Below, one piece after another: positions 12,596-19,823 of a stretch of DNA of 64,000 nt (its first letter is position 1; each line of letters starts with the position of its first letter). Origin of the DNA: Epithemia pelagica. Lineage: Eukaryota; Protista; Bacillariophyta. The notes below the pieces were generated by a model that saw nothing but the letters and a program-made list of their open reading frames with translations, did not search any database and was not told the DNA's origin. Location: contig OX337241.1 in the NCBI GenBank assembly GCA_946965045.2, positions 2,046,001 to 2,110,000 on the forward strand. The letters are read 5' to 3'. The translations under genes and the position numbers were made by a program.

Positions 12596-13196
12596 CTATG
12601 CGTTCAAGCTCCATGCAAACCTCTACGGGCAGAAGCAAGCCGGTCGGGTATGGTACCTATACCTATCCAAGCGACTGGTCAAGGATGTAGGATTCACCAA
12701 GTCACGAATAGACGAGTGCGTCTTATACAACGGGAACACTGTCTATGTTTATACACTGATGACTCCATCATTACTGGACCAGACCAGGACGAGATCAACC
12801 AAGTTATCAAGGAAATCCAGGAAGCCAGACTAAACATCACCGTAGAAGGAACAATCAAAGATTTCTTGGGAGTCAACATTGAACATCAAAAGGATGGGAC
12901 CATTGAATTCACACAGCCACACTTGATAGACAAAGTTTTGTCGGCACTTCGATTGGATGGAAAGACGGTCGATTCAAAGGATGTCCCAGCCGCATCATCA
13001 AAGATTCTTAAACGTCACACGGACTCACCTGAATTCGATAATCACTTCAATTATCGATCAGTCATCAGCATGCTGAATTATTTGGAAGCGGGGTCATGAA
13101 GCAATATAGCACACGCAACGCACCAATGCGCACGCTTCTGCTCGGACCCACGCAAGGAACATGCCCATGTAGTCAAGTGGCTGGGTTGATACCTAC
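12583..13196 (+). mobile_element. Old Ty1/Copia (CoDi-like) element, RT part 1
   Basis: KLHANLYGQKQAGRVW, YTDD (YxDD), DFLGVNIE, FTQPHLI, FNYRSVISMLNYL and HQCARFCSDPRKEH. Contains a frameshift and stops. Confidence 0.95.
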
Positions 13197-14129
13197 CTTT
13201 ACCACTCGTCGTCGTGCCCTTCCTCACTCACTGAGGACTCACTGAGGAGTAAGTCACTCCCCACACTCACACTGCCTAACCCCCCCAAATTACTGTACTT
13301 GAATTTTTATTCTAGTGTAGTCCTGCAAAATAGCCTGGGAAAAGAAAAAGTAGGACCGACAAAAAGTAGCACCCACCAAACACTGAAACAAAAAATGAAC
13401 CAAGGAATGGGCAATGGACAGAGGTTTGCAATTCGCAACAATCCACCATCAACGGACACAGAGGACAAGAAAATTGTGAGTTGGGAGAGCTTTTGTAGGT
13501 ATGTATGGATTATGGCATCCTCCCGGAGGAGGAGGAGGACTCACCTTGGTCAGCTTTCCCATGGTTGTAGTGTCGTTTAATGAGTGGTCGTGGTCGGGTC
13601 GGGAACGGGAAAGTAGAGGAGAGGAGTGGGGGGTGCGGTGGGGGACATACATTGACTCTAAGTATTCTGTTGTCTTATTTATGCAACAAGCACGCCTCGG
13701 AGTTTGATTGACATGCCATAAATGTAACACGAATGTTACTTAGGCATAAACCGTTATTAATCATCCGATGTAATCGGATGTGATCACTTAAGTGACATGG
13801 TTATTTACGAACAATTAAAGAGTACCTCAAAAGATGGGCCAGCCTAATTGTGTAACACTAATTAGGCTTACGACTACTAAGTATCCATTGAGAGAACCAA
13901 TCACTTAGGAAGGCCCAAAATTACCTAGGGTGCGCTGGCACGACTCCTCGTGACAAAGGAAACTAACATACTTTAATTGCCCCGGGGACTCCTCGTCGCA
14001 GGGCGCTCCTCGTCTTAACTCCTCGTCGGGCCATAGCTTCTCGTCGCTATTGCCCTTCTCGTTGTTAAGCCACTCTTCACACCCTAGCTCCTCCTCGTCC
14101 ACCCTCAGCTATCAAAGTAGATTTACTAC
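13193..14129 (-). mobile_element. Non-autonomous mini element related to the adjacent Crypton-like element (933-bp unit)
   Basis: Bounded by CTAC at 13193-13196 and 14126-14129. Its left end (ctttaccactcgtcgtcgt; aaattactgtacttg) matches 14130-14220, and its last ~275 bp match 19145-19418. No credible ORF. Confidence 0.85.
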
Positions 14130-14245
14130 CTTCACCACTCGTCGTCGTACCTTTCCCAAAACGCTACCCACACTACATAAGCCCTAAAAATTACTGTACT
14201 TGGATTTTTATTTTAGTGTATAAAATTAGAATAGCCCAAAATGAA

Positions 14246-14297
14246 AAAGTAGTACACCCAGGAAAGTAGTACACCCAGAAAAGTAGTACACCCAGGA
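14246..14297 (+). repeat. Subterminal ~18-bp tandem repeat x3 (aaagtagtacacccagga-like)
   Basis: Three consecutive aaagtagtacacccag units; the mini element has one related copy (aaaagtagcacccacc). Confidence 0.85.
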
Positions 14298-14791
14298 AAT
14301 CCACAGGGAGAGAATACGGGAAAGAGCACAAAGCGAACAAGAGGTGCACCAACGGAAAAAAGAAGAGCACAACAAACAAACACCACACGAATCAAGCAGC
14401 AAGCACCAGCAACAGCAACGGAAACACAGAGACCAAAAAACAATAATCAAAATGTAGGCAATAATTGAAACACGACACAGACGAGTTTTCACACGACACG
14501 GAAAATTCAGTAGCAAAGAGATGCACCACGAAATTTCATGCCAAGACAGAATTACAAAAATCGTGAACGTGTGAGAAACTGGTACGTAACGTGGAGTGGA
14601 ACGCGGAACAAGTGTCATCATCTAATTCTCACGTACCTTTCGAGACGTCAAGCTAGAGACCACCACCCAAATAGTCATGCAAAGAGCAAACATCAATCTG
14701 TCAAAAAGAGTGAATAAAGGGGTAAGAACAATGATACAGCAATCAACAAGAATGCAACAACAACAGCAAACGTACCGAATACTATGGTACT

Positions 14792-16196
14792 TCAATAGTG
14801 GTAGCCGTATCCATGGCTACCGCCATGGTAACGCGAACCACGATGATGGTGATGATGATGTGGAGGTGGTGGAGTGTATCCACCACCACGGTGGTGGATG
14901 TGGTCACGGTAGTACGGTGGGGGTGGTGGCGATGGAGTGTACGGGCGGTGGTGGTATCCTCGGGAAGAATGGTGGTGGGAATGATGATGAGGATGATATG
15001 GCGGCGAGTCGGATGGTGGTGGAGGTGGGGAGTACCAGTTGTTGCGATGATAAGCAACACGATGGTGCTCCTCCACACGACAATCAACCCCGCGGTCTCG
15101 ACTACCGTCATTGCGATGATATCCACCGTGATGATTCTGAGAGGGATTGTGGTGGCTGGTGTGGTGTTCCGTCGGAACAAGGGCCGTTGACGATGGCACA
15201 TTTGTGGGTGGTGGTGGCAGTTCCGTGGTCGCAATGGTTGGTGGTGGTGGAGGTGGTTGCGACGTTGATGTGGTCGCAATGGCTGGTGGAGCTGCAGCGG
15301 ATACCGTTGGTTCCGTGGTCGCAATGGTTGGTGGTGGTGGTGGTGGTGGTGGTGGCTGTTGCTCAGTCGTTGCTGTTGGGTGTGGATGCGTGGCCGTAAC
15401 AGTAGATGGCAGTGGAGGTTGTTTCATGGCTGTTACGGTGGTTGTTGTTGGTGCTTGGACTGTTGCACTGTTTGGAGGTGGTGCATGTTGGTCCATTGTT
15501 GACGTAGCTGGTGGTGGTTGCACGGCCACCGTGGTTGTTGTTGTTGGTGGTGGTGGTGGTACAACGACTGGTGGTGGCGGTTGTGGCGCTTCATGCTCGA
15601 CTGGAGGTGGTGGAGGAGGCTTTGAAGAAGCCACTGGAGTGGACGAAGGTGATGAAACAGGGAATGGCAGTGAGAACATATAAAGCAACAATCAAACAAA
15701 ACAAAACAAAACAATCTACGTACCAACGATGGTAGAGGGCGGAGAAGTTTTCTTTTTCTTTTGACATCGGGAAAGAACTTCAAGCATGCCATCCGATGAA
15801 GATGACGATGATGATGAGTCCGCGATCGACTTACTCTTCTTCTTCTTCTTCTTGCGTTTTTTCTTGGATTTGGTGTCTGTGGTCAAGAGAAGACGGAATG
15901 AGATCGATGCAACCAAGAAAACAACAAAGCAACAATCAACTTACCATGGGTTTGCGACTTGGACGACTTGGATGGTTTGTCGTCCAAGAGACGAAGGATT
16001 CGCGCCAATGAATCCTCGTCTTCGATGGACGAATCGTCATTCTGTTTCTTGGCAGCCTTGAGCTGCTGCAACGCCTTGCGACGGCGAATCTTCTTCTTGG
16101 CCTTTTTCATAAAGGCCTCAATGTCGGTGGAGGACGACGACGAGGACGAGGGGGATGAAGCGGTTTTTGACTCTTTCTTCTTGGATCTCTTCTCAT
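14792..16196 (-). CDS. Spliced Lys/Ser-rich then Pro/His-rich coding exons of the Crypton-like element
   Basis: Exons 16196-15945, 15876-15724 and 15633-14792. Introns 15944-15877 (GTAAGT..CACAG) and 15723-15634 (GTACGT..CCAG) are both phase-compatible. The upstream acceptor at 16197 is preceded by a TACTAAC branch point. Confidence 0.7.
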
Positions 16197-16255
16197 CTAA
16201 ACATAATAGCAGAGTAGTTAGTAACAAAGTATAAAGAGTGATTCATGCAATGAGT

Positions 16256-18285
16256 CTACGTAAAATTCTTCGTGTTTTCTTTGTCGGCCTCGTCGCTCTT
16301 TTCGGGTGGACGGTACCAGTTGGCCGTGACGGTCCGAACATGATTTTCTTTCGAGACGTCCTGGTACAGTACGTTGACCTCACTTGACTTGTGACGGGCG
16401 AAGGAGTTCGACGACTTCTGTGGTACTCCACAGTTGGCAACGTTCGAGATTCCGGTGCGTCGGCCGGTCCGGAACGTCACCTTCTCGGCGTTGTCAAACT
16501 TGCAACGAATGGCAAGTTGACGGGCATTCCTCAACGGCCAGTTCACGCCCAATCTACCCGCACACTTGAAGCCAGATCCATCCGCGTCATTCTGTGAAGT
16601 CTCGGGGACGAGCTCAGTCCAACCGAGGTGCTTCGCACCATCCTTGCGGGCCTTGAGGTGTTTTGCGGGTATCTGCTCTAGAAACAGCAGACCCTGCCAT
16701 CCTGGCGGGTGCGCCACTTTCATGATGTGCAAGAGGATCTTGTACGTCGCAAACTTATCATCTGGGTTGTCGATGATCATGTGCGACGAGTCTTGTGTAT
16801 CGTTGGCGACTCGATCAAAGGCGAGATTGTTCGTCGCGAGGTGCGACGATTTCTCAAGCACAGATTCTTTGAGAATAATCGCGGGAAGCCCAGCCAACAT
16901 TCCGTACGATTTGTCAAGACACGCCTTGAAAATTAAATCGGATACTTTAAGTAGTCTTATCTGGAGACAACATGCAAGAACCAAACTGTTAGACAACAGC
17001 AGCAACAACAACGGCGACAATCAACAAATACAACAACAACAACAAACAACAACTTACTTCTGGGCCGCGGAGACCGAAGTCTCGGGAAGTCTTGTAGACT
17101 CCCATGCTCAAAGCCGTGGAATACTCGCCGTCTTCGAACGGCCGAAGCTCCGGCTCGCATGTCCGCATCTTTTCTTCGTCGTCGAATGCCGTTGGTGCAC
17201 GATTGGGTAGGCGGCCAAATTCGGGTCGGACGAGGGCTGCCTTGTTCCAAATGTCGGCAAGGTAGGCATGGTAATTGCCAAGCCCATGTTTGAGATCACT
17301 TTGAGCAATCACGATCCCGTGTGTTTTAAGAAGAGCAAAGAGATGGTTCAGCATCTTCATTGTTGTGTTGGGCTGGAAGAAAAACTTGGGGTCCTCCACC
17401 GAATCCGTTTCCATATTGAAACCCCGCATTCGATGGTTCACGAGAAAAACCATTATGCAACTATTCAACAATGTCAATTTCGATGGAGTCTTCACTCCGC
17501 GGAGAGCAAGAAAGAGGAGCGGCGTTGGTGTATCTCCACCCGACAGTTCATCGATATCTTCGACGATTTCAAGAAGAAAGTGCATCTCGTGATGCTTTTG
17601 AAGACACTCCAAAAATTTGTTGACGGAGGCGGCCTTTTCTTTGTCGTATGACGCCTTGCATCCAGTGAGGTCACGGATGGTGAAGGTGTTGTTGCCGTAT
17701 ATGGTTGGAGACAGACGACAATATTGACTCCAGGCGGCCAACGAACGTGCACGAGAAGAGTTCATGGTGGGCGGGTTGAAGGTGACCTCACCAATCCGCA
17801 TGGAGCCCTTTTCGGCATCCCATGTCAGATGCTTCCGTTTGACCAAAGCTTGGGATACAAGCTTGGTATCCACTTTGCAAGATTCCACAACCGTTGCGGC
17901 GTTGAGAAGGGCGTCGTTGGCGCCATTGGGAAGATCGAGACCTTCGATCTGGTGACGACGGGAAGAAGGATCAGGCCTCGCAACATTGCTGAAGGGAAAA
18001 AGGAAACATGGTGGTTAGAATGAGACAGATAAGAATAGAAACAAAACATACTGTCACTTACTTTGATTGCTCTGTAGCTTGGATGTTGTCTTGTTGTTGT
18101 GGTTGTCGACGAGGATTTCGGGAAGGAGGAAGGTTCACTTCCGTTAATGGCGGACGATTGGCACGGTTGTTGGGTGGGCGGCCGGGATTTCGGTACGGGT
18201 TCACGTTATTGGTTGAGTTTGTGGCGTCCACATTGTTTCTTGCGGCCGCCCGCTCCAGTTGGCGGCGAGATTGTCGAGTCGCCAT
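16256..18285 (-). CDS. Tyrosine recombinase (lambda-integrase fold, Crypton/DUF3504-like), 619 aa
   Basis: Exons 18285-18062, 17988-17058 and 16960-16256 with GTAAGT..AG introns of 73 and 97 nt, in phase. Motifs: RDFGLRGPE|IRLLKVSDL (catalytic Arg box I), FRTGRRTG (HxxR position), ARHKS..VLYQ (His and catalytic Tyr). Confidence 0.85.
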
Positions 18286-18516
18286 GGTCAGGCTGTGAAA
18301 CGACGATGAAAAAACGATGCACAATGAAAAATGAGGGTGAGGAAAGTGAAGACGGTGACACTTGCGAGAAAGTGCGGACACGTAGGTTACACGTAGGAAT
18401 CAGTAGGAAACAGAACAGCGACTCAACCATGCGCGCGCGCACGGCAGGTGGTTTGAAATTTTGGGAAGACGTCTGGAACGAAAACACACGACAATGGTGG
18501 GAAACGCGGCGAAAAC

Positions 18517-18942
18517 TTACCGTCTCTGTAGGATTTCCATGATCCAAGGGTCGGAACTACAGGTGCTGAAGTCGTCGGATGACCCAGTACAGTCGTGGTA
18601 GAGTTCCGAGCGGCGAAAGAGATTGCCATCCCATTCGTCTGTTGCATTGTCCTTGGTGACAAAGACGAGAGTTTCGCCCGAAGAGTCTGATGAGCAACTA
18701 GACGACGAAGACGAACTACAAAGATCTATTACATCAGGAGGGGTGCAAAGGTCTATGACTCCACAATCAACCTGTTTGGAAGCATGAGCAACTCCACCAG
18801 AAGGAGGAGGAGTCACCATGGTCGGTTGTCTTCCTTTTCTCATCATGTTGTTGCATTGTTGTTGCACAAAATGTGTCGTCTGTGAGAGATTATCGTGGGA
18901 ATGTCCGTTGGGGGGTGGGGGATCTAAGTAATATATAGACAT
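18517..18942 (-). CDS. Small upstream ORF (141 aa) in the Crypton-like element with two VIDLC motifs
   Basis: ATG-initiated ORF with two SIM-like VIDLC motifs followed by Ser/Asp tracts. No homology recognised. Confidence 0.35.
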   Translation of the reverse strand: MSIYYLDPPPPNGHSHDNLSQTTHFVQQQCNNMMRKGRQPTMVTPPPSGGVAHASKQVDCGVIDLCTPPDVIDLCSSSSSSSCSSDSSGETLVFVTKDNATDEWDGNLFRRSELYHDCTGSSDDFSTCSSDPWIMEILQRR

Positions 18943-19414
18943 TACCTATGTATTCCTGTGTCACGTGTCACGCCTATGTAAACAACACGACTTGTCGTAT
19001 GTACCTATTTGATAGATGCGAGCCATCGGATTTGTTGCGCAAGCACGACAGTATGTTGCTTATTGAGAAACGCGAGCAATCGGATGAGGTGCGCAAGCAC
19101 GCAAGCAAGATACCTAACTAACACTGTACCGGCGCGAATGTAAAAAGCTAAATAGGCCAACTATTACTAAGTATCGATAGAGATAAACGATCACTTAGGA
19201 AGACCGAAAATTACCTAGGGTGCGCCCGCACGACTCCTCGTGACAAAGGAAGCTAACATACTTTAATAGCCCCGGGGGACTCCTCGTCGCAGGGCGCTCC
19301 TCGTGGCTTTCACAGGGGCAGTCCACTCCTCGTCGCTATTGCCCTTCTCGGAGTTAAGCCACTCCTCACACCCTAGCTCCTCCTCGTCCCAACCTGGCTA
19401 TTAAATTAGATTTA

Positions 19415-19823
19415 CTACTGGGAAGGATGACATTCAAACCGAATCAGGATGCAGGATTGGAAGTCTTCGTAGACACCGACTTCGCAGGAAACTGGGACAC
19501 CACCAAGTCCCAGATGGATCGCAATACAGCACGATCGCGCCATGGATAGATCATTTGGTACAAAGGGTGTCCAGAGTGGAAATCACAGTTGCAAACGGAG
19601 ATCGCTCTGAGCTCAACCGAGAGCGAATGCACGGGCTTATCGTACGCATTGCGTGAAGCTATACCATTCATGGAAATATTGAAGGAGATAAAGGCACACG
19701 GCATCGACATCGCGGACACACAAAACTACATTGCAAAGTGTTTGAGGACAATAGTGGCGCCCTAGAGACGGCACGTGTCCACAAATTCCGTCCAAGGACA
19801 AAGCATCTAAATGTCAAGCTGCC
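19415..19823 (+). mobile_element. Old Copia element, RT end / RNase H part 2
   Basis: MTFKPNQDAGLEVFVDTDFAGNW, SQLQTEIALSSTESE, FEDNSGAL and RPRTKHLNVKL continue the RT broken at 13196. Confidence 0.95.

Follow-up and report, generated by a model that had tools for sequence, protein, structure and literature searches.

A probable head-to-tail pair of Crypton-type elements in the diatom Epithemia pelagica

A stretch of 64,000 nucleotides from the genome of the diatom Epithemia pelagica (GenBank assembly GCA_946965045.2, contig OX337241.1, positions 2,046,001 to 2,110,000 of the forward strand), called the window hereafter, carries a decayed Copia reverse transcriptase (RT) gene that is split by an insert of 6.2 kb, and this insert, probably a pair of Crypton-type transposons, is the subject of the present article. 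Two related units lie in it head to tail: a gene-less one of 929 bp (positions 13197-14125 of the window, forward strand), called the mini here, and a large, apparently autonomous one of 5285 bp (14130-19414), which stands in the same orientation with its gene on the minus strand and is one of six copies in the genome. The tetranucleotide CTAC is found on the forward strand before the mini (13193-13196), between the two units (14126-14129) and behind the large unit (19415-19418), exactly where a first-pass annotation, made from the letters of the window, had placed it. Both units start with CTT(T/C)ACCACTCGTCGTCGT, or CTACCTT(T/C)ACCACTCGTCGTCGT if the left tetranucleotide is included, and finish with ..AAAGTAGATTTA; the left terminus is called end B and the right one end A in the following. 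When the mini is compared with the large unit, the left ~190 bp can be aligned, the right ~280 bp, ending in ..AGATTTA-CTAC, are ~90% identical, and weaker similarity reaches ~650 bp inward from the right end, so that the mini is to be regarded as an internal-deletion relative of the coding elements with shared ends. At the internal junction, agatttaCTACcttcaccactcg, the mini's end A is fused with the large unit's end B, which gives the sequence expected at the joint of a circular molecule, as had been noticed before. All that is described below comes from reading the sequence of one assembly, which consists of 60.5 Mb in 23 contigs.

The host of the insert is easily recognized on both sides. 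To the left, a decayed Copia pol occupies 12650-13192 of the forward strand with in-frame stops, and its open reading frame (ORF) at 12650-13099 corresponds to the C-terminal part of RVT_2 (Pfam, E 1.8e-7); to the right, 19419-19800 of the same strand (..LGRMTFKPNQDAGLEVFVDTDFAGNWD..) continues the pol with similarity to Copia relatives. If the insert is taken out and one CTAC is kept, the flanks read W-L-G-stop-Y-L followed by L-G-R-M-T-F-K-P. Thus, the earlier proposal that removal of the insert rejoins the Copia gene stands as far as the frame and the residues YLLG are concerned, while the nucleotide allele ..TACCTACTGGGA.. postulated for the uninterrupted gene was not confirmed: the closest Copia copy is ~81-82% identical, and the nearest relatives in the genome, at ~81%, read WLGRYLLGTRQKGMTFKP with tac-ctg-ttg-ggg at the site. 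Because no Copia copy is closer than ~82%, the exact nucleotides before the insertion are unreadable. The host itself is an old, dead copy. Its frame is interrupted after EAGS, WLG and SRHG by stops (13096-13192 and 19419-19560), and just past the insertion site it is devoid of four codons (TRQK) that are present in the 81% relatives.

The gene of the large unit is split into several exons, all on the minus strand. A probable first exon of 140 codons (18521-18942), for which Pfam has no match, runs in frame to a GTAAGT donor, and the next exon, numbered 1 (18062-18292), has an ATG at 18285 and an acceptor at 18292 that joins it in frame to the upstream exon; each of these two is open in five of the six large copies, and the exons as a whole are open in five or six of them. 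Exon 2 (17058-17988) encodes the core-binding domain of the N-terminus together with the first Arg of the catalytic set, and exon 3 (16259-16960) carries most of the catalytic domain with the invariant K, R-x-x-R-R, R-H and the tyrosine. The splice between them is clear to the eye: exon 2 ends with ..F-G-L-R-G-P-E ahead of GTAAGT, exon 3 opens with I-R-L-L-K-V-S-D-L after ..CCAG, and across the splice the family reads R-x-x-E-[IL]-x-x-L-x-x-x-D-[IL], which we take to be the usual first box of tyrosine recombinases. Further downstream, a Lys/Ser-rich ORF (15883-16227) is probably another exon and a Pro/His/Tyr-rich ORF (14792-15691) probably encodes the C-terminal tail; both are likely to belong to the recombinase, since comparable tails are seen in the relatives P0014, P0046 and P0005. 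In the probable first exon, two V-I-D-L-C motifs are followed by a Ser-rich acidic run, an arrangement that resembles SUMO-interaction motifs.

Protein searches were made with single exon ORFs as queries. A HMMER search with the 254-amino acid (aa) ORF at 16256-17020 gave 86 relatives, among which the named ones are from diatoms, i.e., Entomoneis paludosa (a transcriptome product of 1027 aa) and Cylindrotheca fusiformis. The N-terminal half of these proteins is matched by the 299-aa ORF at 16989-17888, as alignments with P0022 (38% identity, E 4e-43 by BLASTP), P0041 and P0014 show. Thus, both central ORFs are colinear with single diatom proteins and are two exons of one gene. The exon ORFs alone have no match in Pfam, exon 3 alone finds no sequence match in the PDB, and a word-based protein search gave only four unnamed matches; a word search with a profile, dominated by low-complexity words, yielded no named protein. 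In a profile of the family, R-x-x-R-R and R-H-x8-Y align to H-x-x-R-H and G-H-x8-Y of XerA; eight family members all have K, RR, R and Y, and the His of H-x-x-R is replaced by Arg. AlphaFold models compared with known structures, with Z scores as the measure, point in the same direction. The model of the exon-3 product (predicted local distance difference test, pLDDT, 83) superposes on residues 143-319 of Cre with a Z score of 9.6 and a root-mean-square deviation of 3.3 A over 153 residues, and on XerA with Z 8.6. The model of P0022, a relative of 522 aa (pLDDT 71), is closest to Cre, to which it corresponds in both domains (Z 15.5 along 275 residues); next in rank are Xer proteins (Z 12-13), QRICH1 with its DUF3504 (Z 11.0), the integrases of Tn1549 and lambda and Flp (all Z 9-10), and Ndc10 (Z 6.9). 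No RT, RNase H, transposase or any other domain was detected by Pfam in 16 ORFs of the insert on both strands, and no RVT match was found in 40 relatives of the recombinase of up to 1027 aa. Therefore, colinear exons, Cre-like models and catalytic residues bear out the earlier proposal of a spliced tyrosine recombinase in the large unit, which has no other recognizable product.

How are the two units distributed over the genome? By pattern count, ~50 left ends and ~44 right ends were found, corresponding to ~45-50 elements, most of which are minis of 0.7-1.0 kb. The six large copies are 99.0-99.8% identical in a star-like manner, with 99.7% between the window copy and its sisters; among older autonomous relatives, three are ~80% identical in DNA and 86-89% in protein, and one more has a protein of 58% identity. 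The recombinase lineage as a whole occupies at least 38 loci with 38-100% identity in about ten groups, and many of its frames are open; this amounts to an extensive radiation of Crypton-type elements in one genome. Both termini of the coding units recur in more than 25 gene-less minis. These fall into subfamilies A (~759 bp, n=11), B (~1004 bp, n=4) and C (~770 bp, n=7) plus singletons, and the window mini belongs to the last class, its nearest relative being 88.6% identical. Within the subfamilies, pairs of minis reach 99.6% identity; gene-less units have thus moved recently and must be served in trans, which agrees with the partnership of autonomous and non-autonomous elements proposed in the first-pass annotation. 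The other claim on the family, that its copies keep bounded ends and are not ordinary long terminal repeats (LTRs) or terminal inverted repeats (TIRs), is likewise upheld: the same ends recur at the ~50 left and 44 right termini, hence the layout is not a matter of chance, and a repeat search found neither LTRs nor TIRs in the elements. Readings of the insert as LTRs, TIRs or split repeats were considered and rejected, as terminal repeats are absent and three of the six large copies as well as more than 25 minis stand alone.

The most elaborate of these readings would make the whole 6.2 kb one retroelement of the DIRS order (Ngaro/PAT/VIPER) with split direct repeats, whose minus strand reads A1-internal-B1-A2-B2, so that the mini is nothing but the A2-B2 module. 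On the coding strand the layout [B'..A'][B..A] does superficially fit the A1 ... B1 A2 B2 scheme of Ngaro and VIPER, which use a tyrosine recombinase, too (PMC13465315). Nevertheless, we give this reading next to no chance. The RT and RNase H that characterize DIRS/Ngaro/PAT/VIPER are found neither in the ORFs of either strand nor in the 40 relatives, and 5.3 kb has no room for them; nor is a second module present in every copy, since three of the six young copies are without an adjoining mini while minis occur alone more than 25 times. Furthermore, the three minis that do stand beside a large copy belong to different subfamilies and are only 85-88% like the adjacent large ends.

The junctions of these elements with their targets follow a simple rule, which emerged from a table of 34 independent left and 36 right junctions, with 19 further ends held out (13 left ones among them scored for the target). 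On the left, the tetranucleotide is C-T-A-C, in which C is seen in 33 and T, A and C in all 34 of the 34 cases. On the right, it is C-N-A-C, where N is T in 13, G in 11, A in 9 and C in 3 of the 36 cases. In the left flank, which is target DNA, position -8 is G in 31 of 34 cases and position -7 is T in 32 of 34, and no other flank position is conserved; in the window this GT is at 13185-13186 of the forward strand, 8 and 7 bases ahead of the left tetranucleotide. These counts define the target as the 12-bp motif [G/T]T-N6-C-N-AC. Of the held-out left ends, 11/13 have T at -7 and 4/13 have G at -8; TT is found in six ends that belong to the CACTCCTC subfamily. The first-pass annotation spoke of CTAC crossover junctions: the left side is indeed a fixed CTAC (T in 34/34), but the right side is C-N-A-C, so a shared CTAC is not a symmetric crossover core. 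Applied to the window, the genome-wide rule says that element and target share the C of the left junction, whose TAC is the element's own, and that in the right junction C either lies on the side of the element or is shared, TAC being target DNA.

Two empty sites confirm the rule. For the large copy on C7, five paralogs of 97-98% identity read ..gtgcGTacttca-CAAC-cctg where the filled site reads ..acttca-CTAC-[B..A]-CAAC-cctg. For a tandem on C1, three paralogs in a segmental repeat of four copies read ..cattGTcgtcgg-CAAC-acaacaa where the filled site reads ..cgtcgg-CTAC-[mini]-CTAC-[large]-CAAC-acaacaa. Both empty sites have the form GT-N6-CAAC, with the four bases present once. A comparison of empty with filled sites shows that the element contributes the T of the left junction, and the target the N of the right one. 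In 20 insertions the right junction has a base other than T, and the left one has T in 20/20 of them, for which symmetric segregation of a heteroduplex gives P = 2^-20. One-sided junctions like these are thus not the outcome of symmetric exchange with a heteroduplex overlap. The effective join, as read from the junctions, is at or just beside the first C of the tetranucleotide, and a join between C and N is hinted at by one copy, in which the left tetranucleotide is GTAC and the right one CTAC. The right-junction base is not a mark of sublineages among the six young large copies, which were aligned with each other: of 8 informative sites, none divides CAAC copies from CTAC copies. The copy C10b has a unique left flank and therefore no empty site.

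The sites themselves show some curious details. The C7 large copy (C7:3621014-3621513) is separated by 4 bp from where a member of a different repeat family ends; this family has at least six copies of 97-98% identity, and its paralogs at C18:794402, C5:3713299, C5:2302169, C7:505008 and C10:203548 diverge directly past ..caaccctg. At C3:2335269-2335312, two minis of different subfamilies (L009 and L023) stand head to head, and 4 bp separate their left ends (..AAAGGTAG-ctta-CTACCTTT..); the GT in the GTAG of one doubles as the -8/-7 GT in the target of the other. A subfamily with the left end CTTTATCACTCCTC(G/A)T (L073-L079), found at C5:890591, C11:1413038, C16:2543113, C5:1014470, C7:606418 and C11:195799, has TT, and once AT, in place of GT at -8/-7; an autonomous copy with the recombinase of 58% identity adjoins the end at C11:1413038. 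It might be possible that the recombinase and the target base have changed together in this subfamily.

What do the ends of the elements look like? The fixed parts are CTAC-CTTYAYCACTCGTCGT at the left and AAAGTAGAYTTA-C at the right, and when the two ends are joined, AAAGTAG-ATTTA-CTACCTT forms an imperfect palindrome, GTAG/CTAC around ATTTA, of which the target resembles a degenerate copy with a spacer one base shorter. End A is far more elaborate than this core. In intact copies it forms a rod-like palindrome of ~235 nt with six direct CTCCTCGT; folded in the copy L035 (L035:6610-6855), on which the intact fold was checked, it has a free energy (dG) of -61.6 kcal/mol and a z score against shuffled sequences of -9.9, with regular internal loops, and the terminal GGCTATTAAAGTAGATTTA is paired at the base of the rod. 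In the window, end A of the large copy (19215-19414, forward strand) has a deletion of 62 bp at ~19309 which takes away the inner half of the rod (z -0.9), and the mini has a short version of it (z -2.6). The last 200 bp (13926-14125 in the window; L035:6649-6848) are 96-99% identical in all mini subfamilies and autonomous families, while elsewhere the bodies of the same elements are only ~80% alike and their left 120 bp are 82-93% alike. This points to strong constraint or gene conversion acting on one end only. Near end B of the large unit, three tandem 17-nt repeats, AAAGTAGTACACCCAGG (14245-14299, forward strand; repeat family D8), echo the terminal AAAGTAGATTTAC.

The head-to-tail arrangement is not a peculiarity of the window. 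A scan of the whole genome for end A + CNAC + end B with up to one mismatch gave exactly three junctions, namely that of the window and those at C1:373318 and C10:2752373. In all three, a mini is followed by a young large copy, and since the minis belong to different subfamilies (a singleton, A and B, respectively), three separate events are required. The remaining 3/6 young large copies have ordinary flanks without an adjacent mini. The idea of the first-pass annotation that one element integrates at the end of another is therefore supported, with the qualification that the arrays seen are pairs only. Could such adjacency simply be a coincidence of neighboring ordinary sites, or an artefact of assembly? 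An element end does hold a sequence like GT..C.AC, so some insertions beside residents are to be expected, and the head-to-head pair at C3:2335284/2335297 looks like one of them. However, three contigs each have one locus with a base-perfect A-CTAC-B junction, and the mini differs from locus to locus; moreover, a resident right end is an untypical target in that its GT is one base further from C than in ordinary targets. With ~1e5 canonical sites in 60.5 Mb, as estimated from base composition, and 44 right ends, six insertions are expected to land on a right end 0.002 times, and on this estimated number of sites the observed three out of six has P ~1e-9. Thus, resident ends are preferred partners of recombination, and we hold the explanation by coincidence or artefact to be very improbable.

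From these observations, the following scheme can be drawn. The recombinase would excise an element as a circle with the junction GTAG-ATTTA-CTAC, and this junction would recombine with its degenerate look-alike in the target, the exchange taking place effectively at a single position beside C; minis would be moved in trans by the same enzyme. The right junction of a resident element, which consists of the A arm and GTAG-AYTTA-C/NAC (the slash marks the join), would be a near-perfect copy of one half of the circle's own site and would capture incoming circles far more often than ordinary sites do, giving rise to [resident mini][incoming large]. We consider it quite probable that the insert consists of two members of one Crypton-type family and that such pairs come from accretion onto resident ends, with the circle model included. 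A narrower version of this scheme is doubtful, and is put forward as a tentative possibility: a single pair of strands might be joined at one fixed phosphodiester next to the C of the target, with no heteroduplex left to segregate, and replication might finish the process, right ends being super-targets. In the CTX phage, which is integrated by XerCD, one pair of strands is exchanged and replication completes the reaction. Neither a join at a fixed phosphodiester nor accretion onto resident ends was found in the Crypton papers searched in the open-access literature.

It is to be noted that the same product can be reached by other ways. A tandem might be made in reverse, if the circle of a mini enters the left junction (flank-C/TAC-B) of a resident large copy, or in one step, if the recombinase first fuses the circles of a mini and a large copy and the double circle then enters an ordinary target via A(large)-CTAC-B(mini). 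All three routes predict flank-CTAC-[mini]-CTAC-[large]-CNAC-flank. The outer flanks of a tandem represent one canonical target, and if transposition is by cut-and-paste, the age of a lineage says nothing on the date of an insertion. On C1 (C1:372061-378760), a segmental repeat of at least 0.6 kb is present four times with 98-99% identity (paralogs at C1:417k, 474k and 517k); the whole mini and large copy occupy a single empty site and are absent from the other three repeats, so both units arrived after the duplication. Still, we regard these other routes as unlikely. If minis entered left junctions, they should favor the ~40 left ends of minis over the 6 of large copies, and no mini-mini junction exists; a fused circle would be expected to yield [large][mini] now and then, and this order does not occur, though three out of three is a weak count. 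Moreover, the window mini has no close sister, and the mini on C10 predates a duplication, now 4% diverged, in which the large copy is lacking. We thus lean toward the entry of a large circle into the right junction of a resident mini. This preference comes from four facts: in the window, an old mini adjoins a large copy that has 99.7% identity to its sisters; on C10, the left flank and the mini have a duplicate of 96% identity (C10:3416673-3416889, L091) in which the large copy is missing; the right junction retains the whole A arm and the exact spacing of GTAG-AYTTA-C; and the last 200 bp of end A are nearly the same in all families.

Several points weigh against the accretion of large circles onto resident minis as drawn here. 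The other routes named above yield an identical product, and the C10 duplicate has a different right flank. About 22 young minis gave no mini-mini tandem at all (0/22 versus 3/6 for the large copies), so that minis show no general preference for right ends. The GT of the target is one base closer to C than the GT of the element core, and a standard recombinase making staggered cuts of 6-8 bp should leave a segregating heteroduplex, of which the junctions show none. The large copy of the window may be immobile now, since 62 bp of its conserved palindrome are gone. Finally, circles, excision and enzyme activity are deduced here from a single assembly. As to the C10 duplicate, its mini is cut to ~215 bp and its right flank is unrelated, which fits either an old duplication or a rearrangement at the right end of the mini.

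To which known group does the family belong? Cryptons are defined by a tyrosine recombinase as the only enzyme, by the absence of RT, TIR and LTR, and by short terminal repeats that are microhomology with the target (PMC3212892; PMC13465315), and the present element, with its recombinase, no other enzyme and microhomology at its ends, shares these features as far as its sequence tells. Within the Cryptons, it does not agree with the groups to which it was compared by ends, motifs and Pfam matches. Oomycete CryptonS elements have TATGG termini, which the first-pass annotation gave for stramenopile CryptonS, while the SWIM finger that it also ascribed to them is not mentioned in that text (PMC3212892). 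CryptonS-1_PTri of the diatom Phaeodactylum tricornutum, with 4671 bp and 4 copies, has CTGTAAG ends (PMC3212892). The ends of the E. pelagica family are CTAC and C-N-AC in all ~50 copies, unlike the 5-6-bp, mostly TATGG termini of CryptonS. Its catalytic motifs, R-x-x-R-R ... R-H ... Y, are also different from H-S-x-[RK]-R ... R-G-x-W ... Y of CryptonS, as read from the published alignment (PMC3212892). There is no Pfam match at E <= 1 in the exons or the 40 relatives to DUF3504, the mark of CryptonA, or to NDC10_II and GCR1_C, those of CryptonF, and in the fold comparison of P0022, QRICH1 and Ndc10 score below Cre. Set apart by termini and motifs, the family may thus be distinct from CryptonS. 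It has in common with Cryptons the recombinase alone, a direct repeat of microhomology, low copy number, an excess of non-autonomous over autonomous copies and a stramenopile host, and adds to them, as features that did not turn up in the Crypton papers searched, a defined 12-bp target, a one-sided junction, the 235-nt rod palindrome and the head-to-tail pairing with minis. Non-autonomous Cryptons were already known, and no head-to-tail Crypton pair, comparable target motif or one-sided junction has been reported in the open-access literature searched.

Parallels to the pairing can be sought in bacteria. In Streptococcus thermophilus, ICESt1/ICESt3 and CIME elements reportedly undergo accretion by site-specific recombination at att. 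The likeness, which is one by analogy, would be that an autonomous element enters the att flanking a gene-less relative, the product is a tandem with a shared internal att, and the partner depends on the recombinase of the other; repeated and independent integration at a resident end, which characterizes accretion of this type, is seen here at three loci with three mini subfamilies, the order of arrival being inferred. The bacterial elements differ in that they use one fixed chromosomal att and conjugation, while the diatom family is eukaryotic and its degenerate 12-bp targets are found genome-wide. Another comparison is offered by Tn916/Tn1549 and CTnDOT, which have a circular intermediate and enter targets that share few bases with the joint, with a loose consensus by the exchange point. 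By analogy, the diatom family may resemble them in its circular intermediate, tolerant targets and loose consensus. Those elements, though, leave heteroduplex coupling sequences that segregate to either end, whereas in the diatom family the base of the element stays left and that of the target right, in 20/20 informative insertions and two empty sites. Among eukaryotes, DIRS1 of Dictyostelium is said to insert preferentially into other DIRS1 copies, and may be likened to the diatom family in that it uses a tyrosine recombinase and inserts into or next to its own copies; it differs in being a retroelement with RT, whose self-insertions form nested clusters in place of precise end-to-end joins.

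Among the DNA transposons of eukaryotes, no class is less well understood than the Cryptons. A model of their transposition with a circle was reportedly put forward by Goodwin et al. in 2003. The family described here combines a clear target motif, two pairs of empty and filled sites that place the join within a base, a conserved and structured end, young intact copies and natural junctions like those of a circle, and these features make the circle model directly testable, in an alga if this diatom can be cultured. For annotation of genomes, it is to be kept in mind that head-to-tail Crypton pairs can be mistaken for retroelements with split repeats. The three tandems also suggest that the accretion of autonomous elements and their dependent partners, known from integrative elements of bacteria, occurs in eukaryotes, too.

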